NCBI GenBank assembly: GCA_002269645.1 | Contig: NIVC01000759.1 | Location: forward strand, 186,001-250,000 | Length of the DNA stretch: 64,000 nucleotides | From: Macrostomum lignano | Taxonomy: Eukaryota | Direction: 5' to 3' | Shown here: positions 7,190 through 57,457 of the stretch, one piece after another | Layout: every line of letters starts with the position of its first letter | Numbering within the stretch: the stretch's first letter is position 1 | Program-made: the position numbers and the translations under genes | The notes under the pieces: model-generated | What the model was told of the DNA's origin: nothing | Seen by the model: only the letters and a program-made list of their open reading frames with translations | Databases searched by the model: none

Positions 7190-9356
7190 CAAAGTATATG
7201 TTTCGAATGGCACCTTTTGGCATCAACTCTATCTCTGAATATTACAACAGGAGACTGGACAGTGTTCTGCAGGGTTTTAAAGATACTCGTGGACGACTGC
7301 ATAGTTGCAAGCGCCGACTACGACAGCCACGTCCAAGCTGTTCGTGAATTTCTTAATCGATGTGACGAGAGCGAAATCGCATTAAATAAGAAGTTTGTCT
7401 TCGCCAAAAAAATGCCAAGGTTGCTGGATTTTTGCTCTCACAGAACAGCTATCAGGTGGACCCAGACATGACAGCAGCCATTGCTCAATTTCCAGAGCCA
7501 CCTAATATTACAGAATTACGTGCATTCATGGGCTTAGTGAATCGGATAGGACCATTCACAGACTCGATCGCGGAATGTACCTCAACGCTAAGACCTCTTC
7601 TAGGCACAAAAAATTCATCCATCTGGAATGAGGAGCACCAAAAGGCCTTCGATAAGGCACGAATCCACCTGTCCAAAGTTCTATCTTTGGCATACTACGA
7701 TCAGATAAAGCGAACAGCATTGCAACAGATGCGTCAAGATTGAAGGGACTCGGAATAGTCCTTAAACGGCAGCAAAAAGATGGCACATGGCTAATGTTAC
7801 AAGTTGGATCTCGATTTCTAGCTGATGCAGAAACGCGATATGCTATGATTGAGCTCGAATTGCTAATAATTGTATGGGCTGCACAAAAGTGTCATCTATT
7901 TTTAGAAGGATTGTTGGCGTCATTTGAAACCGTGACGGATCACAAACCACTTATTCCGATCCTAAATAGCTATCAACTGGACCAAATTGAGAACCCACGG
8001 TTACAGCGCCTTCGCGCCAAGCTTAATCGTTATAACTATGATGCTAGATGGGTTCGAGGTAAAGACAACGAAGACGCCGATGCACTATCAAGGTTCCCCA
8101 TTGCAAATGCGACTGAGGAAGACCAGATTGACGAGAGTCAAGCGGTAAGCAGCGTGAATTTACTTATGATGGCAATAGAAGATACGGAAATTGATGTTAA
8201 CATGAAGAAACTACAAGAACAAGTGAAGAATGATGCAGAAATGCAAGACCTTATCCGAGTTATCGAGAATGGAAATGGATTTCCAAACGACAATGCTAAT
8301 CTGCCAGTTAATCTAAGACCATATTGGCACGCCAGACATAAGCTCGTTGTCGAAGATGGGATCATTCTCAATGGATGTCGATGCATAATTCCTAAAGACA
8401 TACAACGAGAAGTTTTGAGAACTCTGCACGCGAGTCATCAAGGTGCTACTAAAACCAAAGCAAGAGCAAGGATGACAGTCTATTGGCCCGGCATGGAACG
8501 TAAAATAGATGACACAATAAAACAATGCAAGGCATGCCAAGAAAACCGGCCAAGTCAAACCACAGAGTCGATGATGCAGAGAAATCCGCCAGGAAGGTGT
8601 TTCCAGGAAGTTCACGCGGACTTTTGTGAATTTCGCGGCAGGCAATTGCTAGTGATAGTGGATTGCTACTCAGGCTGGATCAACGTCTGGAGTTTCGGAC
8701 AAAACGCTCCGGTTTACAAGCTTATCAATGCATGCCGTGAGCTATTTCGTCAGACAGCCGTACCGGAATCCTTCTGGTCAGACTCAGGCTCTCACTTCAA
8801 AGCCAACGTCTTTGTAAATTTTCTGAAGAGATGGGGAGTTGAGTCCAGATTCTCATCGCCTTACCATCACCAAAGCAATGGAAGGGCTGAATCCGCAGTT
8901 AAGTCTGCCAAGAAGATTATCAGAGGATCTTGGGACTATCGAAACAACGACATAGACAAGGGCAAGATGGCAGAAGGCATTCTGTAGAAGAGTCTTGGCC
9001 GAATCAGAATTGGCTCGACTGTGGTTCTACAAGACCCGACAACCAAACTGTGGCAACGGAGGGGCGTGGTGGTGGAGGTAGGCAAACACCGCGACTACCT
9101 GATCAAGCTAGCTAATGACCGAATACTACGGAGAAATCGTATCTCCGTCCGGCCAACACTACCATGGAACGCCGATTATCTGCAACAGGCGACTAACAAG
9201 CTGGTGGATCAAGAACGTACCAAACGGACAATCAGAGACTTGGGGATCAGAGGCCATCGGAGAGACCTCGCGTTAGCGCCAGGTCGACAAAAAATCCCGC
9301 CAGTTCGGTTTCAGTACAGCCGACTGGGGCAGCCGAAAGTTCAGTTTCTTGAGTAA
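7190..9356 (+). mobile_element. Degenerate Ty3/Gypsy LTR-retrotransposon pol (RT-RNase H-integrase)
   Basis: RT: YMFRMAPFGINSISEYYNRR, LVDDCIV. RNase H: GSRFLADAETRYAMIELELL, VTDHKPL. Integrase: HASHQG...YWPGM...CKAC, VHADF, SDSGSHF, SPYHHQSNGRAESAVK. Several frameshifts and stops. Confidence 0.95.
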
Positions 9357-9588: not shown

Positions 9589-10104
9589 TGTTGTAGAAAT
9601 TGAACAAGTCAAAGGGCCGTTAATTTAGCTAACATGAAAAATAAAAAATTAAGCGCTCACTGAGAGGCCTGCAATACCATATAATATATTTAACTATAAG
9701 TAGTCTCTCGCAACAGCCACCCCACCATGCGCACTGAGGAGGGGGGACGCCAAGCGTACACACAAACCAGAGGGTGCTAGGCAGGCACACAACTAACCCT
9801 AACACTCCCCCTAATGATGCTTCATCATTACAACAGACTTGATAACTAAAAATGAAACGCACCATCACCAGAGTACTAAGTTATCGAAAAAGCAGAAACA
9901 CAAAAGGCGCAAAGCGCAAAAATGTAAACACCGTCACCAGCGTACTGTAAATTAGAGAAAACCAAATGTTGCGTTGAGAAGTGTGCTCACAGAGCACGAG
10001 AACGATAAGCTAGGATAAGAACTTGAAGATTGAAACTAAGGAGAGATAAAGACTGAGAACTCAGATGTCAATCATCACTGTCAGTTTTAGAAAAGTTAAG
10101 AACA
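9589..10104 (-). repeat. BEL 3' LTR (right boundary approximate)
   Basis: The first ~180 bp match 14690-14867, and the segment lies directly after the integrase stop at 10107. Confidence 0.7.
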
Positions 10105-10106
10105 GT

Positions 10107-11158
10107 TCATTCAGTCACGGCTTCTAGCAAAATCAGGTTCTCAACCGGTCGGCGAGTCAAGCATCTCCTGGGTCCGCGGCCTGGCTTTTGCGCGACTCGA
10201 ACTGTTGCCGATCTCACTGCTCCGTCTCGTCCCGGATGCACCGCCTCGATAATGCCAGTACACCAGGTAAGCCTCGGTTGGCCAGCTTCGCCTTTCACCA
10301 GGACGATGTCACCGACCGTCGCCTCTCGGATCACGCCATGCTTGGGATTGAGCCGATGTTCACGCAGGCTGGTCAGATATTGCCGCACCCAGCAGTCCCA
10401 GAAGGTGTGAAGTCTGGCGCGCATTCGCTTAAGCAGTTTTGGCAACGGTAGCAGAAGATCTGGTGCGCAACTAGAAGTAGGCTCCGCTGCCAGCCGCTGC
10501 AACACCAGGAAGTGTGCCGGTGTCAGAACTTCTCCTTCGGGTTCGGCATCCACGTAGAGCAGAGGGCGGCTGTTGAGCACCGCCTCTACTTCCATGAGCA
10601 CAGTCAGCAGTTCATCCAGTGTGAGACTGGAATTTAGGAGGGTCTTGCGCAGTGCCAGTTTTATATCCTTCATCAGTCTCTCCTTGAAGCCTCCTTGCCA
10701 AGGAGCGCGTTCGGTGATGAACTGCCAGGTGATCTTTCGTGTGGCGCAGAACTCTTGGACCTTTTGACTCTCTGATGCTTGCAATATCCGCGCGGCTTTG
10801 GCGAATGTCTTAGCGTTATCGTTGATGAGACTAGGGATACCTCTCCCGCATAGAATCTCCTTAGGGCTCTTAAGAAAGTTTCAGTTGTTAGATCATTCAC
10901 CAGTTCTAGATGAAGCGCTCGCGTTGCTGCGCAGGTGAACACCAAGATGTAGCCCTTCTCGACAGCAGTGTCCTCTATCAGCTTGACCGGACCACAGTAG
11001 TCGAGCCCGCTCCACTCAAACGCTCTCATTGCTTTCACGCGAGATTCTGGCAACGCAGGAACTTGCTTCACAGCGAACGGGAGTCCCTGAAGACGCCTGC
11101 AGACGACGCATTTTCCAAGAATTGCCAGTAGTAGCAAAATGGTACGGTCAGGCCCACG
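10107..11158 (-). pseudogene. BEL/Pao integrase (frameshifted)
   Basis: CVVCRR, SGLDYCGP, FTCAATRALHLELV, WQFITERAPWQGGFKERL, LNSRPL, LTPAHFL, FWDCWVRQYLTSLRE, GDIVLV, GRDGAVRSATV. Confidence 0.92.
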
Positions 11159-11325
11159 TCGCTGATTGGCTGGCCAATCAGCGAGGGGGAGCCAATCAGC
11201 GATGAGGAGGCCCCGGAGGCGGGGCGGGGCAGGCCGGAGGTAGGGGTGGGGCAAGCCCAGTAGTGGGGTCGGGCAGGCCGGATTAGGGGGTCGAGCAAGC
11301 CTAGGAGTGGGGTCGAGAGCAGGCC
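11159..11325. repeat. Left terminal inverted repeat with hairpin, CCAAT repeats and GC box
   Basis: TCGCTGATTGGC-TG-GCCAATCAGCGA (11159-11184), a second GCCAATCAGCG at 11191 and GGGGCGGGGC at 11221. It is the reverse complement of 13817-14040. Confidence 0.9.
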
Positions 11326-11635
11326 CAGGGGTGGGGTCGAGCAGGCCAAGGTGGGGTCGGGCAGGTGGGATGAGGAGTCGAGCAAGCCTAGGGGTGGGGT
11401 CGAGCAGGCCCAGAGGTGGGGAGCAGGCCAGATGAGGGGTCGGGTAGCGAAGTGTCTGGAGTGTCCAAGGGTGAGTTGACTGAGTGTCCAAGATGGGTAT
11501 CGAGATGTGAATGAGTGTCCACTGGTTAGTGTCCTTTACCGCATGTGGTGACATGCAAGACAGAGTTTCAATGTGATCGGTCAACGGGTAGAGGGTCCGA
11601 TTGCTTGTAATTTCCAAGTAGAGAGGGGTAGAGAT

Positions 11636-11792
11636 TCTATTGGTCGAGAAAGCATTTGAAGTGATTTCCCCGGAATTTCCTAGTATAATGTGGGGAAGGG
11701 ATTCTATTGGTTCTAGAATCTAGAGGCCCCTGGTGCACAATTTGATTGGTCAACACACCCCGCGAGAGAAGGGGTCCAGTACCCTTTATAAG
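11636..11792 (+). promoter_or_regulatory. Putative promoter of the PC4-like ORF (three ATTGG boxes and a TATA-like element)
   Basis: ATTGG at 11639, 11706 and 11745; TTTATAA at 11785-11791. Confidence 0.45.
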
Positions 11793-11961
11793 CAAAGCAC
11801 CTTGCGCTCGCTAAGCTTCATGCAATTTTTTAAAACGATTTCTGATGGCGTTCAAAGAGCTACTACATGGTTATCGCATCAGCCTGGTGCCGGACACACG
11901 GACCATCAGTATTAGAAAGTGATTCAAGTCTGGCGAGGATCATCGGCCAGGTCTGCCCGGC

Positions 11962-12468
11962 ATGGAGCTCACCATCCATCAATTCCGATACCTGGCCAGC
12001 TTGAAAGAGCGCTTGGAAGAGTTCGCTGACAGGAAACTCGATGCGCAATGCCTTCTGGGTGGCAACAGGCAAGTGGTGGTCAAAGATGGTGCAATCTCAC
12101 TCTGGCGCCTTCCAACAGTGCTCGGCCCCGTGCTGCACTTGAGACATGCCCTGCCGCTACCAACTGAGCAATGGCGACAGCTGTGGCAACACAGGCAATG
12201 GATATTGGAAGAACTCGAAAGACCCGCCAACCCGTGGTGGCTCGGAAACTACCCCTCGGAGCCCGAAGAGTGCGCGGAGTGGGCGTCGAAACTCTCGATG
12301 GACCAGCTGGCGATGTGGCCAGAGACGCAGCCAGCAGAGTGGGATGACCATTGGGAGGCATGGCAGGCAGTCCAGACCGAGTTCCACAAACGCTATGTGC
12401 CATCAGCGGAGCCCAGCCAGCAAGCTGAAACTCCCACGCCACCAAGGAAGCGCGCGCGCAAGAATTGA
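11962..12468 (+). CDS. PC4/Sub1-like ssDNA-binding domain protein with C-terminal basic NLS
   Basis: LLGGNRQVVVKDGAISLWR...ALPLPTEQWRQLWQHRQWILEEL resembles the PC4 pattern LG..R.V.V...IDIRE...GISL..EQW..L. The protein ends PPRKRARKN. Confidence 0.55.
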   Translation: MELTIHQFRYLASLKERLEEFADRKLDAQCLLGGNRQVVVKDGAISLWRLPTVLGPVLHLRHALPLPTEQWRQLWQHRQWILEELERPANPWWLGNYPSEPEECAEWASKLSMDQLAMWPETQPAEWDDHWEAWQAVQTEFHKRYVPSAEPSQQAETPTPPRKRARKN

Positions 12469-12507
12469 CTTCCTTTTACTGTGCATTTCGGGCCATAATA
12501 CTGCCCA

Positions 12508-12867
12508 TCATGCTTTGATTCCGGGCGATAATACTGTTATGCCGTTGAGGAGCTCAGTCAGAGTCCAGCAAAGTAGGTTCGAATGCTTGTCTGCATGCAA
12601 AATGCGGGAGAGGGCATCAGCTGCAGTCTGAGCCTCAACCACGCTGCAAGCACCAGCTATAATACAACGATACGAATGAAACAAAATCAAATTTACAGAG
12701 GCAGTAAACTCGAACACAAGTCCGTTAAAAATTTCCGGCTCGTAGGTGCCCCGATGCGGCCAGTTACACTTGACTTCCTCCAATCGGAGTGGATGCCGAC
12801 CCGCGGGAAAGGCCGTCACAGAGGTAATAGTCTTGATGCGAATCTTTGGCAGACTGGTCAATCGCAA
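12508..12867 (-). CDS. Single-repeat TATA-binding-protein-like ORF (no in-frame ATG; start possibly frameshifted)
   Basis: HPLRLEEV...TYEPEIFNGLVF...NLILFHSYRCIIAGA...RIL aligns by eye with the TBP repeat FPIRLEGL...SYEPELFPGLIY...LLIFVSGKVVLTGA...PIL. Confidence 0.85.
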   Translation of the reverse strand: MRLTSLPKIRIKTITSVTAFPAGRHPLRLEEVKCNWPHRGTYEPEIFNGLVFEFTASVNLILFHSYRCIIAGACSVVEAQTAADALSRILHADKHSNLLCWTLTELLNGITVLSPGIKA

Positions 12868-12874
12868 GAAGCAT

Positions 12875-13015
12875 TTTTATTGGTCAGCAGACCCGAGTCA
12901 GATATTTTGAGAATCTTGACTTTTGTCCAGATGGTCCGATTTTCGAGTGAGTGGGTTTCTATTGGTTAGAAAACTTTGGTGTCGGTGCAATGAGGCCCAA
13001 AATCTATATAATCAA
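12875..13015. promoter_or_regulatory. Putative bidirectional promoter between the TBP-like and RING ORFs
   Basis: ATTGG/CCAAT at 12879 and 12961, TATATAA at 13005-13011, lying between divergent ORFs. Confidence 0.45.
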
Positions 13016-13086
13016 GGCGCCTGGGCTATTTGAGGCTCAGTTAGTGTACCTTTATGACTATACAAAATTTAAGCTGTTAATTTACC

Positions 13087-13422
13087 ATGGCTCACCAATA
13101 TCAGATAAATCAGATAAAGAAAATTATTCAATGCGGTATTTGCCTGAACGAATGTTCGGATCCACGGGCACTACCTTGCCTGCACACCTTCTGTGCTCAC
13201 TGCATCCATGGCTTGCCGCGAACTCAGCAGATAATGATTAACTGTCCAATGTGTAGGAGGCTTTGCGAACTGTCTGATCCGGCAGCTTTGCCAAAAAGCT
13301 TTTACTTTGAACAGCTTAAGACAGTTGTCGCAACTTTTAACTTACAACCATCGACGTTGCCAGCAAGGGAACATGCTGGTATTGGTCAATCACCAAAATA
13401 TATGGTGGAGATATTAGGGTGA
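13087..13422 (+). CDS. C3HC4 RING finger (TRIM/RNF17-type), N-terminal half of a probable RING-Tudor protein
   Basis: CGICLNECSDPRALPCLHTFCAHC...CPMCR...LPKSF. Confidence 0.9.
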   Translation: MAHQYQINQIKKIIQCGICLNECSDPRALPCLHTFCAHCIHGLPRTQQIMINCPMCRRLCELSDPAALPKSFYFEQLKTVVATFNLQPSTLPAREHAGIGQSPKYMVEILG

Positions 13423-13830
13423 TAGAGATTATCTCCCCTAATCACTTCTACTGCATCCTACCAGAAACTCCGCCAACAGAGTTTCTACCTACGGAACTTT
13501 CGGGTCTGCTCAGTCTAGCAGAATCCCACGAAGTTGGGGTAAAGGAGATGTATGTTGGCCGCTTTTCCCGTGCGCTATGTCACAACGTCGACCGGTATTA
13601 CCGCATGCGGATTCTAAGCATAAATGTGAGCACTAACACTGCCACGGTGCTGCTAGTCGACTATGGTCATATCGATCACTCGAAACCCATGTCTGAGATC
13701 TACCGGCTAAAAGTCCTCGATCCTATCACGGCAATGCTAATGAAAGCACCGGAACGCGCGATACGCTGCCACCTTCGCAGCATTAGCGCCTGCCCGCCGT
13801 GGGCAACTAATGACGCGGCCTGCTCTGGAC
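13419..13830 (+). CDS. Extended Tudor domain; the ORF continues into the right TIR (stop at 13988)
   Basis: VIEIISPNHFYC...DRYYRMRI...ATVLLVDYGH...SEIYRL...PERAIRCHL follows the eTudor pattern. One extra G in TTAGGGTG at ~13417 would fuse it in frame to the RING ORF. Confidence 0.85.
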
Positions 13831-14040
13831 CACTCCTAGGCTTGCTCGACCCCCTAATCCGGCCTGCCCGACCCCACTACTGGGCTTGCCCCACTCCTAC
13901 CTCCGGCCTGCCCGACCCCACTACTGGGCTTGCCCCACCCCTACCTCCGGCCTGCCCCGCCCCGCCTCCGGGGCCTCCTCATCGCTGATTGGCTCCCCCT
14001 CGCTGATTGGCTCCCCCTCGCTGATTGGCCAGCCATCAGT
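13817..14040. repeat. Right terminal inverted repeat of the cassette
   Basis: Three CGCTGATTGGC copies (13983, 14001, 14019) and an imperfect terminal hairpin TCGCTGATTGGC-CA-GCCATCAG. Confidence 0.9.
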
Positions 14041-14606
14041 TCTCGGCTGTGATGTTAAGGCTGGCGATCGAATTTCTTGGCTTCTCCTGAAAGGCATGAT
14101 TGCAGGTAGCTAAACTTGTCGACGACGCTGAGGCTCGCGTTATCGTGGATGCTGGAACTGAAGCGGTCCCAGAATGCAGTCCATTGCGTCCTATCTCCAT
14201 TGAATGCTGGCGGCGGCAGCCTGATGGCCGGCGTAGTCGTCAAAGCAGCATTCTCTTGCGGTGACGTGGATGGAGTTGACTCTTTCGTTTGCTGCTGCTC
14301 TTTAGCCTGTATGCGGCTTTCTCGCTCGACCTGAAGACTCTGCAGTCGCTTGGCGAGACTCGAAATCATCTTCCCAGCCAGCAGCTCGTACTTTATTGTC
14401 TTCTCCACTTCCTCTTGGAGTATTTTCTCGTCGATCTCAACGAACAGCTCTTCATCCGCTACCAGCAGCTGTTGCTTCTTGAGGCGCAGGGCTTCCAGTA
14501 CGCTGTCGATTTCTTCCTCATCAGCCCCTGAGTTGAGCAGGTCTTGGGCTTTCTGGGCCAATTTGGTGACCGTCGATCTCAAAACTCCACACTTTTTGGA
14601 GTCCAT
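14041..14606 (-). pseudogene. BEL/Pao gag N-terminal part (DUF1759-type)
   Basis: LPPPAFNGDRTQWTAFWDRFSSSIHDNASLSVVDKFSYLQSCLSGEAK, continuing after a frameshift as IASLNITAEN up to the cassette junction. Confidence 0.9.
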
Positions 14607-14679: not shown

Positions 14680-14867
14680 TTGGGCGCCATGTTGTAGAAA
14701 TTGAACAAGTCAGAGGGCTGTCAATTTAGCTAACATGAAAAATCAACAAATAAGCGCTCACTGAGAGGCCTGCAATACCATATATATATTCAACTATAAC
14801 TAGTCTCTCGCAACAACCACCCTACCATGCGCACTGAGGAGGGGGACGCCAAGCGTACACACAAACC
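14680..14867 (-). repeat. BEL 5' LTR (truncated) with primer binding site
   Basis: On the minus strand ...CTACAACA is followed by TGGCGCCCAA (tRNA-Lys-type PBS). Identity with the 3' LTR stops at 14867. Confidence 0.85.
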
Positions 14868-17204: not shown

Positions 17205-17450
17205 GGAGCGGCTCGAGAAGAACCGATCACCCTAAATCTGGAAAACAGCGCGGCGGTGGTAACGCAGCCATGATGACCCTGCTGAAAGAGCGGCTCGAGA
17301 ACAGCCGGATAGCCCTAAATCTGGAAAACAGCGCGGCGGTGGTAACGCAGCCATCATGACCCTGCTGAAGGAGCGGCTCGAGAACAGCCGGATAGCCCTA
17401 AACCTGGAAAACAGCGCGGCGGTGGCAACGCAGCCATCATGACCCTGCAA
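17205..17450. repeat. Tandem repeat, ~82-84-bp unit, 3 copies
   Basis: gagcggctcgagaacagccggatagccctaaatctggaaaacagcgcggcggtggtaacgcagcca is repeated. Confidence 0.9.
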
Positions 17451-17988
17451 ACTGCCACTCTTGCTGCACTCAAGCACAACATCAGCTTCTGTGAGTTTTA
17501 CATGCAGGGCGCCTGGCAGCTGCTCAGTGACCCGCTCTCACGGGCGCTCACCCACCTTCGGCATTTGCTACTCTTTCTGGTGCAATTCTACGGCACCCAG
17601 CCTTGGCCTGTGGAGGATAAGACTCCTGCTGCCTTAGCTACCGCGTCGCTGATCAATTGGACGTGCAACTTTGGCAGTGCGTTAACAGTAAAAAGTATTT
17701 TTTCTGCCTTTTTCTTTTTTAGGTTTAGGGTTGCTACCGTCCCCTTTCGTGCCAATGCTGCTCTGCTCTTGTACTCGTATCTTAGGTTTAAAATGTAAAG
17801 CAATTATCTACCGTGATATGAACGACCCAAAGGTGACCTACGAGAGCATTCTCGGATGATGGCAAATCGCGTGACTAAAAACTTGAGTTGAATTTACTTT
17901 TCAATCCATTCTGGATCCCCAACCCTCTGAGCCAAGATGGCTTATAAAATAATAAAATAAAATAATATAGGTAAAGTGCGGGTCTCAC

Positions 17989-25996: not shown

Positions 25997-26610
25997 AGTG
26001 GTGCAACCAGGAGGGGCGGGCGGTTGCCTCACCCCCTTAGGTGGAGACCAGAAAAAAATCAAAGGGGGGGCCAAGCCAATTTTCGATAAAATACAGAGCC
26101 GCACCCCCTCCGCCCCCTTGGGTCTTTACCCTCCAGAATCCGCCTCATTGGGTCCTTACCCTCCAGAATCTGCCCCTTGTGTCCTTACCCTCCAGAATCC
26201 GCCCCCCCCCTTGGGTCCTTACCCTCCAGAATCCGCCCCCTTGGGTCCTTACCCTCCAGAATCCGCCCCCTTGGGTCCTTACCCTCCAGAATCCGCCCCT
26301 TGGGTCCTTACCCTCCAGAATCCGCCCCCTTAGGTCCTTACCCTCCAGAATCCGCCCCCTGGGTCCTTACCCTCCAGAATCCGCCCCCCCCCCTTGGGAC
26401 CTTACCCTCCAGAATCCGCCCCCCTTGGGTCCTTACCCTCCAAAATCCGCCTCCTTGGGTCCTTACCCTCCAGAATCCGCCCCCCCCTTGGGTCCCTACC
26501 CTCCAGAATCCGCCCCCCCCCTTGGGTCCTTACCCTCCAGAATCCGCCCCCTTGGGTCTTTACCCTCCAGAATCTGCCCCCTTGGGTCTTTAGTAATAAT
26601 GTCTCTTGCC
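25997..26610. mobile_element. MITE-like element (CAGTGGTGCAACCAG start) with an internal ~30-bp minisatellite expansion
   Basis: Homologous to 58089-58290 and ~34870-35620. The unit ttgggtccttaccctccagaatccgccccc is amplified over 26120-26590. Confidence 0.65.
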
Positions 26611-26888
26611 AGCTATATGGCAATCTAAAGTTGCCTAATATTAAAAACAGGTTACATATAGCCCTATATACATAATAGTTACATATAGCCTCAGATTTAA
26701 TATTTAAAATATTTTATACTAATAGAGAAAAAAATGAGACATTGGCTATAGAAAAAAGCAATATTAATAGCATTTATAGCCTTTATATATTATATTAAAC
26801 TTACATTGACTTTGCTGATCTTGCTACAATTTTCGGGCTATTCTTGCTATATTAGATTAAAGTGATAAAGCATTATATATAACATAGA

Positions 26889-27521
26889 CAAGCTGTTGAA
26901 ACCCGCGGATTTTGAACCCGGGGAATTCCAATCCCCGGAACTATTTTTGCATGTATTCTAAAATCTAAAGTCATTCTCAAACAAAAAATTGTTAATAGTT
27001 AGTAGGATAGAAGGTAAACATAAAATGGAGCACATTCGTGTAAAATTAGAATTTGAGGCAAACATTGATCTTGTTGGCTGGCGTGCTGCGCAGAATGTCA
27101 AGCAATGTCTGCCTGACTCTAAAACATGTATTGGCAAACTCTGGCCTCTGCCTCACCCTGCCTCCCTTGGATCCTTTGAAACATCTATCTTCTCTTCTGT
27201 TTCCTCTTTTCTCTCTCGTCCCTCCTCTCTCCTCTCATCTCTTCTCTTTCATCTCACTTATCTCACATATTCTCTCTCTTCTCTCTCTCTACTCTTTTCT
27301 CTCTCCTATCTCCCCCTCTTCTCTCGTCTCTTCCTTCTCCTCTCTATTCTTTCCTCTCTTCTCTCTCGTCTGCTCTCTCATCTCTCATTTCTCCTCTTTT
27401 ATCTTTTCTCATTTTTCACTGCTCTCTACTCTCTCTTCTCTCTCCACTCTTCTCATTCCTCACTCTCCCCTCTCTTAACACTTCCCTCTTCTCTCTACTT
27501 TCTTATCTCTCTTTTCTACTC

Positions 27522-27599
<78 letters not shown>

Positions 27600-29145
27600 C
27601 TTTCCTCTTTCCTCTCTCCCTCTTCTCTCGTCTCTTCCCTCACCTCTCTACTCTCTCGTCTTTGCTCTCTCATCTCTTCTCATTCCTCTCTGCTCTCCTC
27701 TCTCTCTCTCCCTCTCTTCCTTTCTCTCTTATCTCTCCTCTTCCGTCTCTCTTCTCCTCTACTCTTTCCCCTCTCCATTCTCCTCTTTCCTCTCCTCTCT
27801 CCTCACTCACTTCTCTCTCCCCACTCACTTCTCTCTCCCTTTGTCTCTCCTCTCTCCTCTTGTAATCTCTCCTCTGTTCTCTCTACTCTCCCATCTCTCG
27901 TCTGTTCACTCTCGTCTCTGCTCTCTCACCCTCTTTCATTTGTCATCTTTACTGTATCATATTTTCTCTCACCTCTCTCCTCTGTACTCTTTTCTTTTCC
28001 CTCTTTCGACTCCTCACTTTCCTTTCTCTCCTTTCTTCTCTCTCTCTTCTCTTCCTTCTTCTATACTCTCTTCCTCTCTTGTCTCTCCTCCTTTATCTCT
28101 CATTTCTCATCTCTCCTTACACCTCTCTCATCTCTACAACCTTATCTCTTCTCTCTTCCCTTTAATCTCTTATCTCTCCTTTCACCTCTCTACTCTCTGT
28201 TCTCCTCTCTCCTGTCTCCTCTCATCTGCAGCTCTTTGCTCTCTCATCTCTACTCCCTTCTCTCTCCTCTCTACTCGCTCCTCTTATCTCTCTCATGTCG
28301 CTTCTCTTTTCCCCTCTTCTCCCCCCTCTCTCTCTCATCGTCCTCAACCCCTCATCCCTCCTATTATCTTCTATCTTTTCTCTTATCCCCTCTCTCGCCT
28401 CTCCTCTCTTTTCGGATTGTCCATTTCTTCTTTTTTCCACTTACATCTGCCCCTCAGCCATGAGCTGGATTCTTTATCTGGCCTTTAAGTTAAAATTCTG
28501 CCCATCCATGCTTGGAAAGCCAGTTTGTGGGACGTAGTACTCTCATGGTTGCTCTCATGCTTTGATCATGTCATCTTTCTTGCCAATTTGCAGCCCTGAA
28601 AGGAAATTGTGTATCTTTAGCTCCACTGCAGTCTGCATCAGTCTAACAACCAAGGAAATATGCATTTCTTAGGAGGCCATTTAAATTTTAAAGTACTTTT
28701 AACAGAAACTTAAAATTTCCATAGTGTGACTAATTTAGTAGGGTTGTATTGGATTGCAATGCCTTTTCATAAATCTTTCGCTTTTAAAAACCATGCTGGA
28801 TTCCCTTGATTTGCCAATTGCCAATTGACAGAGAATAAGTCAATGAAAAAAATGTGTCAAGTTTAAAGTCAATTGCTTTATGGGGAGCAAAATTTTGGCA
28901 GCTGAAAGTTAGTCAATTTTGAAACCCCTTTTATATATATCTGGACCTCGATAAGGAAAGAGAAGCAGATAGGTGGAAGTTGGGATGGCTATCTTGCTGA
29001 CAAAAAATAGCCTAATTTTAAAAATGCATAGTGCTGTTCAAGATTAACTTTAAGACTCTAAATTTTACATGATTATGTCAAATTAGTTGAAGATTGTCTG
29101 TCAAATTTGAAAATAATCAGTAGAAGTGGAGTGGCCCTATGGAAG
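26889..29145 (+). mobile_element. Interspersed repeat with CT-rich interior (Helentron-associated/DINE-like), copy 1, 3' truncated
   Basis: Starts caagctgttgaaacccgcgg like 54760. The flanks of the CT-rich core are collinear with copy 2. Confidence 0.6.
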
Positions 29146-36806: not shown

Positions 36807-47755
<10,949 letters not shown>

Positions 47756-51243: not shown

Positions 51244-53505
51244 TCAGGACCTGGTTTCGTAGAAGCCGCTCTTGCCGATGTACCGAACCCACTTGATGAC
51301 GTCATGATCCGAGTAGTTCAGCTTGGACTCGAACACCTTCAGGTAGCGGACTTTGAAGCCGGATGGAGCGAAGGGCACCTGCGGGAATTTCAGTGTGAGA
51401 TTCCGATGCAAGTTTGGGATTCACATGCAGCTAATGTACATGGGATTCTAATGTACAGTGTGAGATTCCAGTGCAGCTGATGTAGTGTGGGATTCACATG
51501 CAGCTAATGTACATGGGATTCTAATGTACAGTGTGAGATTCCAGTGCAGCTGATGTAGTGTGGGATTCCAGTGCAGCTAATGTAGTGTGGGATTCCAATG
51601 TAGCTAATGTACAGTGTGGGATTCCAATGTAGCTAATGTACAGTGTGGGATTCCAGTGCAGCTAATGTACAGTGTGGGATTCCAGTGCAGCTAATGTACA
51701 GTGTGGGATTCGAATGCAGCTAATGTACAGTGTGAATTCCAGTGTAGCTAATGTACAGTGTGGGATTCCAGTGTAGTAATGTACAGTGTGGAATTCCAAT
51801 GTAGCTAATGTACAGTGAGGGATTCCAGTGCAGCTAATGTACAGTGAGGGATTCCAGTGTAGCTAATGTACAGTGAGGGATTCCAGTGTAGCTAATGTAC
51901 AGTGAGGGATTCCAGTGTAGCTAATGTACAGTGAGGGATTCCAGTGTAGCTAATGTACAGTGTGGGATTCCAGCAAGCAGTGATCCGACATAGCCACCTC
52001 AAAGTTCATGGAAATGGGCGGCCGGGTCCACTTCTTGGCTTTGTCGGTGGAGCTGAGCATGTCGATCTCGGCGCTCAGCTGCAGCTCCTTCATGCCGCCC
52101 ATCCGCTTGATCTTCCACACGATGGCGTTGTCGGAGGCCTTGTACCTGGCCCGGCCCTTCATGCAAACCACCTGCACTCCGCTGGTGTTCAGCGGGGTGG
52201 GGATTCGAACCTCAACCTTCTGGGCCAGCAGGGATGGCTTGAAGTTGCTCTTGACCACCACCTTGACCTCCATGCCGGACCGGCCGGTCTCGCGCACTAA
52301 CGGGATGACCCGGAACGGCAGGCTGATGTCCTTGGTGGTCCGGTAGGTCATGAGTTCGAACTCGCCGTCCGGCGGGATGAACGAGATGGAGTGCTCGGTG
52401 TCGAACTTGCTGAGCTTCACGCACTGGTGGAACTGGCAGTCGTCGATGGCGATGTGGCCGGACTTGCCCCCGCCGCCTCCCGAGGCTTCGCCAGCGCCGC
52501 CGCCGCGCCTGCTGTCCACCACGACCTTGTCGTTGATGCCGAACTTGCACTCGGGCATGCCGGACAGGTAGGACTTCATTCGGACACGGCCGGACACGTG
52601 GGCGGACAGCACCTGGCCCTGGGGCGACATCAGCAGGTTGACGGACTCGATCACGTCAAGGAACAGCTCGTTGCGCCGGTACTTGATGCCCTCCCGGCGC
52701 CAGGCAATCTGTCCCGTGACCTGCGGGATATTCAATGGTATACGGATGCTTGGGCGGTTGAAATTAATAGACAAAATAGAAGGCTGTCTACGCAACGGAA
52801 CGCTCACTACGTCAATTAAGGTTAGCTGAAGGTTCAAACATTAATATTAATAATTTATGAAGGCTTAGTGAAGTTAGTGAAGGCTCTCTACGTCATTTAG
52901 GAATCTCAACGTTAGACAAGGATCCCTACGTTAACGAAGGTTCCCAAACTTAACTAAGAATGCCTACGTTAAAGACGGCTCCCTTCGCTACGATACCCTA
53001 CAATAAATAGTCGAGGCTCTTTACGTAAATGAAGTCTCCCCCACCCCACCTGATTGGTAATTCTCGTGGTCTCCTCCTTGGTCTGCGCCCTGACGCCCTG
53101 CTGGGTGATGTAGGTCTTCAGCACGCCCGTGTCGGTGTTCTGCGGGTAGCCGTAGTCCAGCAGCTCGTCAAGCAGCTCGTAGATGAGCACAAAGTTATTC
53201 TTGATGTTCTCCTCGTTGATCTTGCCGAAGTAGGACACCATGACTTCGATCATCTTGTAGAGAAACTGGAACACCAGCGATGCGCTGACATTCTTCTTGG
53301 CCACCGCGCACAGCCAGATGTTCGACCGCTTCACGTGGAAGAAGCTGGTGCGGCCGATGCTGCTGACTGGCGACCGCACCTGCTGCCTGGCGTGAATGAC
53401 GTTCACCCTGAAGGCGTCCACCGCCTCGCGACCGATGTCGTCTCGGTAGACCCGCGAGATTAGCACCTCGCCTTTGTGGTTGTAGATGAATAGGCCGCCT
53501 ATCAT
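51244..53505 (-). CDS. AP2M1: AP-2 complex subunit mu, 3 exons, 437 aa
   Basis: Exons 53505-53050, 52720-51998 and 51378-51244: [23 protein letters not shown]...[23 protein letters not shown]...[14 protein letters not shown]...[26 protein letters not shown]...[16 protein letters not shown]. Confidence 0.98.
51400..51970. repeat. 29-bp minisatellite filling AP2M1 intron 2
   Basis: ggattccagtgcagctaatgtacagtgtg is repeated. Confidence 0.95.
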
Positions 53506-54759
53506 GGCTGAGCTGTGTGACACTGCCCTGCTCAGCTGGCAATCAGCTGGTGCATGCATGCAACGGTACTAAATAAATAAATTTTTGTCAACATCCATAA
53601 CAAAGGACAGAATAGCTAAGGGGTTGATATGCTCATATATACGATTGGGAATACCCCAAATAGAGCACTAAGGATATATATATATAACAGGGTGCAGTAG
53701 CTTTGGGGTTAACAAGAATGCAAACAAATTTTATACAAAACTATAGAATCAATAGGCCTACCTATCCAAGGTTTGATATTATATATTTATTGATTTGCTT
53801 GACAATTTATATTGAAATATATTATAACAATCTGGCTATTAAGCATTATTGAAGATTATAAGCATAAAGACATAACAAGACAGGTACTGCAAATATTGTT
53901 GTTGGCTACTAAATATTATCTATAACTAAAATCAAAACTCAATAGAAGGGAAAGTTACATTATTTTATAATATATTTACTGAAGTTAATGTTTTAGAAAA
54001 TAAAAAGATTTATATATTATCTAAACAAAACTAGAGGCTATAGTAGGCTTAAACCTATATGAATAAAACCTTTATATAAAAGAAATATATTGTATAACAA
54101 GTAGCCTTGTAAAATATTATGATAAAGTGACCAAATATTGAAATACCTAGAACTTAGCTACTTAATACTTTGATATCATATCAACTAATCAGTGAAATGG
54201 TAAATGACAATGCATTGCAACACAGATTAGTACATATGGTAATGCATACAAAACTATTAAAAAATTTAGATACTTTATCTTCCTATTAAAACAATATAAC
54301 CACCAATAAAATGGCTACTCGTCTTAAATATAATTTTTTTTTAAAAATTCAAACACTAATACAAATTTTATATACAATCTTTATACTTTAATTTACTTAC
54401 AATTGACATGCTTAGTAGATGACAAAATGACTCCCTTAAATTAGTATATACAAATTAAGATGGCAAAATGACTAGAACCAAAGTGGGATCATAGATACCA
54501 TATTAAATGACAAAATGACTCCCTGTTATTGTATATTGATTAAGATAACAAAGTGACTAGAACCAAGAAGGAGTCATAGATATCCTATTAAGTAACAAAA
54601 TAGATTATAATGACAAAATAGCAGATAATAAAATGATTAAGAACTACATAAATACTAAGGGTTAGACAAATCATATTTTAGAGATTTTTTAAATTTGATT
54701 GAGATTTGAGATTAGGTTTAATTAACATTTGTAGGCCTATTTACACTATTTTATCTATT

Positions 54760-57457
<2,698 letters not shown>

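Follow-up and report, generated by a model that had tools for sequence, protein, structure and literature searches.

The window (the whole stretch of DNA analysed here, 64 kb long) carries at positions 13087-13830 of the plus strand a broken copy of a RING-extended Tudor (RING-eTudor) gene, consisting of an intact C3HC4 RING, a linker and a Tudor core with its N-terminal SN-like strands. The RING portion is encoded by an ATG-initiated ORF of 111 aa (13087-13422, plus strand) that scores above the cutoffs of the Pfam RING models zf-RING_UBOX (30.8 bits, cutoff 25.2), zf-RING_2 (28.3 bits, cutoff 27.3) and zf-C3HC4 (27.1 bits, cutoff 21), with eight of eight zinc ligands in C-x2-C...C-x-H-x2-C-x2-C...C-x2-C spacing at residues 16-56. 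The profile matches and the ligand spacing bear out what a first-pass annotation of this DNA had described, namely a C3HC4 RING ORF whose stop overlaps an ORF for a Tudor domain. Among solved structures, the RINGs of TRIM2 and TRIM3 are the top matches to the RING ORF (1.2e-12), and it is the RING together with the helix after it that is covered and that resembles these proteins; they differ from the window in that here a Tudor follows the RING, without B-box, coiled coil or NHL repeats. Upstream of the RING ORF, a TATA-like octamer (13005-13012, plus strand; ~75 nt 5' of the RING ATG) and two inverted CCAAT boxes (ATTGG; 12879-12883 and 12961-12965) were read from the sequence as consensus motifs only.

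The Tudor ORF (13419-13988, plus strand) lies in another frame, its start being overlapped by the RING ORF stop. It matches the Pfam TUDOR profile with 26.1 bits (cutoff 23) over profile positions 13-119 of 121, and with 24.4 bits in a six-frame scan. Its translation contains YYR and VDYG and then the His, all as first read, and alignment reveals the N-terminal strands of an extended Tudor in the window copy.

Relatives and integrity of the RING-Tudor copy

An exhaustive HMMER search, in which the Tudor ORF was compared with 1.84 billion proteins chosen at 50% identity to represent a set of 15 billion, returned 147 matches, nearly all of them giant multi-Tudor proteins at ~30% identity, with "protein tudor-like" and TDRD1 as named examples. 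Two closer matches, each with a single matched stretch, stood out (P0004 and P0006), and no other relatives comparable to them were found among these 50%-identity representatives. P0004 is a continuous RING plus Tudor protein of 293 aa, encoded on a 1,014-nt contig from the public run SRR24204725, that is 51% identical to the window RING ORF (7e-29) and 40% identical to the Tudor ORF (4e-34) in pairwise comparisons; when it was compared with the window by tblastn (2.7e-51), both parts were matched and their order was kept. Because P0004 is continuous and aligns to both ORFs in order, we conclude that the RING and Tudor ORFs are halves of one gene. The earlier proposals that the two ORFs belong together and that a minimal RING-Tudor fusion exists thus hold, the latter in the form of P0004, in which the fusion is intact. 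The P0004 gene is intronless on its contig. On this contig (L001, 1-1014), a TATA-like motif lies ~110 nt before the ATG and the end falls 21 nt past the stop, and repeats flanking the gene may have interrupted the P0004 assembly on either side.

P0006 (PAA70739) is a partial two-Tudor protein of Macrostomum lignano whose second Tudor, the nearest annotated Tudor, is 41-44% identical to that of the window. There is no RING exon within 10 kb upstream of the P0006 Tudor gene, and comparison of the window with a 22.6-kb M. lignano locus revealed only two short repeats in common (59 nt at 86% and 87 nt at 76% identity).

In the window copy, the frame shifts once between the RING and Tudor parts, and no internal stop interrupts either homologous stretch. 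Both frames are open together over 82 nt; the first ATG of the Tudor frame is not encountered before residue 51, and the GTG "start" of the Tudor ORF is an artefact of the bacterial ORF rule. No X_XXY_YYZ slippery heptamer was found in the 82-nt two-frame overlap, and a programmed -1 frameshift was therefore rejected. An intron was also rejected as the source of the frame change, no GT/AG pair in the linker combining the required length class with a plausible size. The frame change could be an assembly error. The first-pass annotation had bridged the frames by a single added G, but the junction peptide obtained in this way does not agree with the relatives, as the Tudor-frame homology to P0004 and P0006 starts several codons upstream of the ORF start that had been used.

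The Tudor homology to P0004 and P0006 ends at ~13802-13823, and at 13816 the right arm of an inverted repeat starts (see below). The C-terminal ~70 residues of P0004/P0006 have no counterpart in the whole 64-kb window. As the homology stops at the start of the repeat arm, the last quarter of the Tudor module is absent, and the window Tudor amounts to about three quarters of an extended Tudor with an OB-fold half that is incomplete at the C-terminus. The assignment as an extended Tudor therefore stands as far as the TUDOR profile score is concerned, but not for the C-terminal ~70 residues. The decay of the window copy is slight, with an intact RING and with frames that lack internal stops; at the divergence of the long terminal repeats (LTRs) of the surrounding element, the neutral expectation is only 1-2 stops, and the stop-free frames thus neither support nor refute selection. 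The copy nonetheless cannot make a RING-Tudor protein, and judging from the sequence the most it could yield, if driven by its own TATA-like promoter, is a peptide of 111 aa comprising the RING alone.

The methyl-arginine cage and the known RING and Tudor proteins

The pocket of extended Tudors for symmetrically dimethylated arginine (sDMA) is built from four aromatic residues and one Asn (PMC4152741). Across 37 canonical eTudor segments, cage positions 1-4 are aromatic in 92, 97, 95 and 100% of cases and the fifth position is Asn in 92%. The corresponding residues are C/Y/L/Y with H at the Asn position in the window copy, S/Y/L/H with M in P0004, and Y/H/L/F with Y in P0006. Aromatic residues thus occupy two of the four positions in the window, and P0004 and P0006 likewise lack a full cage. 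The first-pass annotation had noted the exchange of the cage Asn for His, which is correct; the loss is wider, however, with two of the four aromatic positions gone as well. A precedent is offered by eTud10 of Drosophila Tudor, in which cage positions 1 and 3 are Ser and Leu (the aligned window residues being Cys and Leu), and which does not bind methylated Aubergine (Aub) peptides in isothermal titration calorimetry (ITC) (PMC4152741). Given the degenerate cages and the non-binding of Tud10, the whole small clade (the window copy, P0004 and P0006) is unlikely to read sDMA in the canonical way. The earlier suggestion that this Tudor binds PIWI proteins or methyl-arginine is thus not supported, in view of the C/Y/L/Y/H cage, the Tud10 precedent (PMC4152741) and the truncated OB-fold half.

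Cage-independent contacts are known for other eTudors, as the upstream Tudor of Krimper (eTud1) binds Ago3 independently of sDMA (PMC10711660), and a role of the intact family in protein docking is therefore possible. Both eTud10 and Krimper eTud1 are complete domains within large multi-Tudor scaffolds that lack a RING fusion, unlike the window family. The proteins of this family have a TRIM2/3-like RING and, directly after it, one extended Tudor, P0004 being the sole intact example found, and they might act as E3 ligases whose eTudor docks a partner without a canonical methyl-arginine cage.

An AlphaFold model of P0004 built on a 4-row alignment reached a pLDDT of 40.6 and was not used; the model from a 42-row alignment was used in its place. 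In the latter, most 10-residue blocks of the Tudor half have a pLDDT of 72-95, while the RING half remains below 50. The part that is missing from the window copy is modelled as a confident helix, strands and the terminal helix of the OB-fold half. The P0004 model matches the solved eTudors of TDRD1, Papi, TDRD2, Krimper, Qin and SND1 at 1e-10 to 1e-7, although the model leans to canonical eTudors because these fill most of the 42-row alignment.

RNF17/TDRD4 of vertebrates and Qin/Kumo of Drosophila combine a RING with several Tudors in proteins of 1,000-1,800 aa that belong to the piRNA ping-pong pathway. Like the window family, they have an N-terminal RING-type zinc finger and extended Tudor(s); the window family differs from them by its single eTudor in a protein of 293 aa (P0004) and by its degenerate cage. 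With a general eTudor profile derived from the relatives, the solved structure of Qin Tudor 3 (7oc3) came up at 1.4e-17; the P0004 model matches this structure too. One Tudor stretch was detected in the window by six-frame scan and one in P0004, no match named RNF17 was returned, and Qin appeared only among the general eTudor matches; the Tudor has its top solved match in TDRD1, and the RING in TRIM2/3. As the family has a single Tudor and a RING of TRIM2/3 type, and as neither RNF17 nor Qin is its specific best match, we do not count it as a member of the RNF17/Qin family, and consider it a small variant of the RNF17/Qin RING-plus-Tudor theme.

The eTudors of TDRD1 (5m9n and 4b9w) are, among solved structures, the top sequence match to the family profile (5e-5) and also the top fold match to the P0004 model (3e-10). 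As in the family, SN-like strands are followed in them by the Tudor core and then by an OB-fold C-terminus. According to the entry descriptions, these TDRD1 domains were crystallised with dimethyl-arginine peptides, and the 5m9n pocket reads F/Y/Y/Y/N compared to C/Y/L/Y/H in the window. Moreover, the TDRD1 eTudors are complete, whereas the window copy lacks the C-terminal part of the fold.

The inverted-repeat-bounded segment and its BEL/Pao host

The RING-Tudor copy is located within a ~2.9-kb segment (11160-14041) that is bounded by inverted repeats of ~200-280 nt and contains three intronless ORFs. The arms were defined by repeat search, TRF and arm alignment: the left arm (11160-11445) comprises 18-nt CCAAT-containing repeats, a GC-rich box and 22/44-nt tandem repeats, and the right arm (13816-14041) begins where the Tudor homology stops. 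The two arms are 88-94% alike, with an exact inverted core of 110 nt (11173-11282 equals 13902-14011). This core holds two 18-nt CCAAT-bearing units as well as the GC-rich box; at their outermost ends, both arms are near-palindromic. If the two arms carried convergent promoters, sense and antisense transcripts of the enclosed segment would result.

Head-to-head with the RING ORF and 220 bp from it lies a TBP-like ORF (12508-12867, minus strand; 119 aa) with a single TBP repeat, which scores 32.1 bits with Pfam TBP (cutoff 22.9) and is matched by solved TBP structures at 3.5e-7 and weaker, those of archaea being closest. Canonical TBP has two repeats, and a six-frame scan found no second repeat in any frame nearby. 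The third ORF (ORF168; 11962-12468, plus strand; 168 aa) is an orphan of no family, separated by 40 bp from the TBP-like ORF and preceded by a TATA-like motif (11787-11791) ~170 nt upstream; it returned no Pfam match, no significant PDB match and no IMG/VR relative. The ORF168 product is Trp-rich, with a basic stretch at its end.

The segment is framed by the remains of a BEL/Pao-like element on the minus strand. Its 5' LTR (14690-14867, minus strand) is a direct repeat of the 3' LTR (9589-9768, minus strand); these 180-nt repeats are 93.3% identical, such that 6.7% of positions differ. A PBS-like 12-mer starting with TGG (14689-14678, minus strand) comes after the 5' LTR, and a purine-rich tract precedes the 3' LTR. 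Next to the right repeat arm lies the N-terminal part of gag (14055-14606, minus strand), with a DUF1759 match (4.3e-14) over profile positions 1-44 of 148, and gag is cut off at this arm after DUF1759 position 44. The C-terminal part of pol (10107-11165, minus strand) is present as two overlapping ORFs in different frames. DUF5641 (4.6e-14) and a weak rve_3 match fall within 10107-10784; the upstream ORF has no Pfam or PDB match, and the stretch 10785-11165 is assigned to integrase by position only. We take DUF1759 and DUF5641 together to be the usual marks of BEL/Pao elements. Neither protease nor reverse transcriptase (RT) nor RNase H was detected in a six-frame Pfam scan of 11401-14060, and the rest of the space between the LTRs is taken by the gag and pol remnants, leaving no room for these enzymes. 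The BEL/Pao retrotransposon is thus dead, its enzymatic core being replaced by the inverted-repeat-bounded segment, and both BEL junctions coincide with the outer ends of the arms. The window at large is eukaryotic DNA full of transposon remains; a Ty3/gypsy-type pol remnant (7740-9356, plus strand) with RNase H, integrase zinc finger and rve core adjoins the BEL/Pao 3' LTR, and with this remnant directly beside the LTR, transposons are nested or adjacent here.

The exact core of the arms bears on the relative age of segment and element. At the divergence of the LTRs, a 110-nt stretch would be free of differences with a probability of 6.5e-4. As the 110-nt core is exact compared to LTRs that are 93% identical, the segment is probably younger than the element, barring gene conversion, which could account for the arm identity in place of youth. 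The segment was therefore probably inserted or formed after BEL/Pao integration, and the RING-Tudor gene is accordingly not one of the BEL/Pao genes. It also runs antisense to the BEL/Pao element and lies outside its sense-strand gene set. The label "element-encoded" given to the RING-Tudor protein in the first-pass annotation is hence not supported: the gene is antisense, resides within an insert that replaces the BEL/Pao core and looks younger than the element, and no second copy of it was found.

Origin of the copy and the piRNA pathway

On balance, we regard the RING-Tudor copy as probably a decayed passenger copy of a rare lineage-specific RING-eTudor gene, carried in an inverted-repeat segment that is nested in a dead BEL/Pao element. 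The segment would have entered, or been rearranged into, the BEL/Pao element after insertion of the latter; its entry or rearrangement would have removed protease, RT and RNase H, and it is through the same event, or through an earlier capture of the segment, that the RING-Tudor gene would have lost its 3' end. This sequence of events and the role of the intact family are both inferred; the analysis covered a single genomic copy.

A related but unlikely reading holds that the segment (11160-14041) is a second mobile or virus-like DNA element or part of one, for instance a TIR/foldback-type transposon or a Pack-type carrier, that landed in the BEL/Pao element with the RING-Tudor gene, the TBP-like repeat and ORF168 as its passengers or accessory genes. 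The inverted repeats of ~200-280 nt with their exact 110-nt core and internal tandem sub-repeats would suit such an element, as would the compact arrangement of the three intronless ORFs (40 and 220 bp apart, with a TATA-like motif upstream of two of them) and the fact that P0004 is likewise intronless on its contig. Two of the three ORFs, moreover, correspond to cellular domain proteins only in part, one to half a TBP and the other to an eTudor that is truncated. Gene fragments are known to be carried inside transposons, as in Pack-MULE-type transduplication and as passengers of LTR elements, and Pack-MULE-type carriers resemble the window, by general knowledge, in that partial genes for cellular domains lie between inverted repeats in transposon sequence; they differ from it in that a target-site duplication, a transposase family and multiple copies were not found here. 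A six-frame Pfam scan revealed no transposase or other mobility gene in the segment, no convincing target-site duplication emerged (a single 4-nt match among 17 x 18 boundary choices), and the BEL flanks of the segment are not contiguous, with ~3 kb missing. Furthermore, neither a second copy of the RING-Tudor gene nor one of the segment exists in the 64-kb window, and no relative was seen in viral or metagenome contigs.

The latter searches covered several collections. A word-indexed protein search with the Tudor ORF gave no matches, and none of six window ORFs looked up by exact match was present among the 15 billion proteins. Tudor patterns yielded nothing in JGI metagenomes, and none of 50 metagenome loci with a TRIM-like RING had a window-type Tudor, an ORF168 or a TBP-like ORF beside it. 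Scans of the TBP-like ORF, ORF168 and the Tudor against IMG/VR were also empty, and a virus-derived origin gained no support from them. A word-indexed protein search with the BEL gag fragment returned no matches either. As even this gag fragment has no relatives in the protein set, the source species appears to be poorly represented in the searched collections, and the absence of other copies is therefore weak evidence.

It is very unlikely that the three ORFs are host genes in their original place, flanked on either side by unrelated transposon insertions. The closest annotated Tudor does belong to a Macrostomum lignano host gene, and the ORFs have promoter-like motifs of their own, but they are embedded between gag and pol remnants that share one strand, one matched LTR pair and a PBS-like site, both junctions lie exactly at the inverted-repeat ends, and two of the three ORFs are truncated domain fragments.

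Highly improbable is also the anti-defence function proposed at first, in which a working RING-Tudor protein, whose frame change would be explained by misassembly or by programmed frameshifting, binds PIWI and ubiquitylates or sequesters it to counter piRNA silencing. In its favour are the intact RING, the lack of internal stops, the TATA-like motif upstream, the position of the gene within transposon sequence, the intact RING-eTudor protein known elsewhere (P0004) and a theoretical proposal that transposons encode mimics of piRNA factors (PMC6367137). Against it, the last ~70 eTudor residues are absent, and the cage reads C/Y/L/Y/H where Tud10, with a small residue and Leu at positions 1/3, fails to bind methylated Aub (PMC4152741). 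Moreover, the element around the gene is dead and has no RT, the gene is antisense to this element and the insert probably postdates it, a slippery site is lacking, and no other copy was found anywhere searched. Ubiquitylation or sequestration of PIWI by the window copy is thus unlikely.

Transposon-encoded mimics of piRNA-pathway proteins have been invoked speculatively to explain the fast evolution of the pathway (PMC6367137), and a transposon-borne RING-Tudor protein, if real, would be the first concrete candidate for such a mimic. The present analysis removes this candidate as it stands, the copy being a broken and truncated passenger with a degenerate cage. What still stands is the minimal architecture of one RING and one eTudor, intact in at least one organism (P0004) and with a close Tudor relative found only in Macrostomum, as well as the compact three-ORF inverted-repeat segment in place of the BEL/Pao core. 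As a long shot, the RING-eTudor family might travel as inverted-repeat mobile cargo in flatworm-like genomes, with intact members hijacking or disturbing the Tudor-scaffolded piRNA machinery independently of the cage and with the window copy as a decayed example.

Rfam and tRNA scans of the window were empty. Elsewhere in it, the only clear cellular housekeeping gene seen is a 295-aa ORF (51950-52837, minus strand) that strongly matches (6e-74) the family of adaptor-complex medium (mu) subunits. An RNase H domain (2e-13) is encoded by a 433-aa ORF (39217-40518, plus strand) in the GC-rich block that spans 36-42 kb, and this ORF probably belongs to a further retroelement. At 17225-17473, an 83-nt unit occurs in three tandem copies (95% and 71% identical to the first). 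Three blocks (26001-28000, 42001-44000 and 54001-56000) are extremely asymmetric between the strands, with a GC skew of -0.35 to -0.54 and an AT skew of -0.25 to -0.34, and probably represent satellite or simple-repeat DNA; the long ORFs they contain resemble artefacts of low complexity, one instance being a spurious 'Enas' match (41864-43243).
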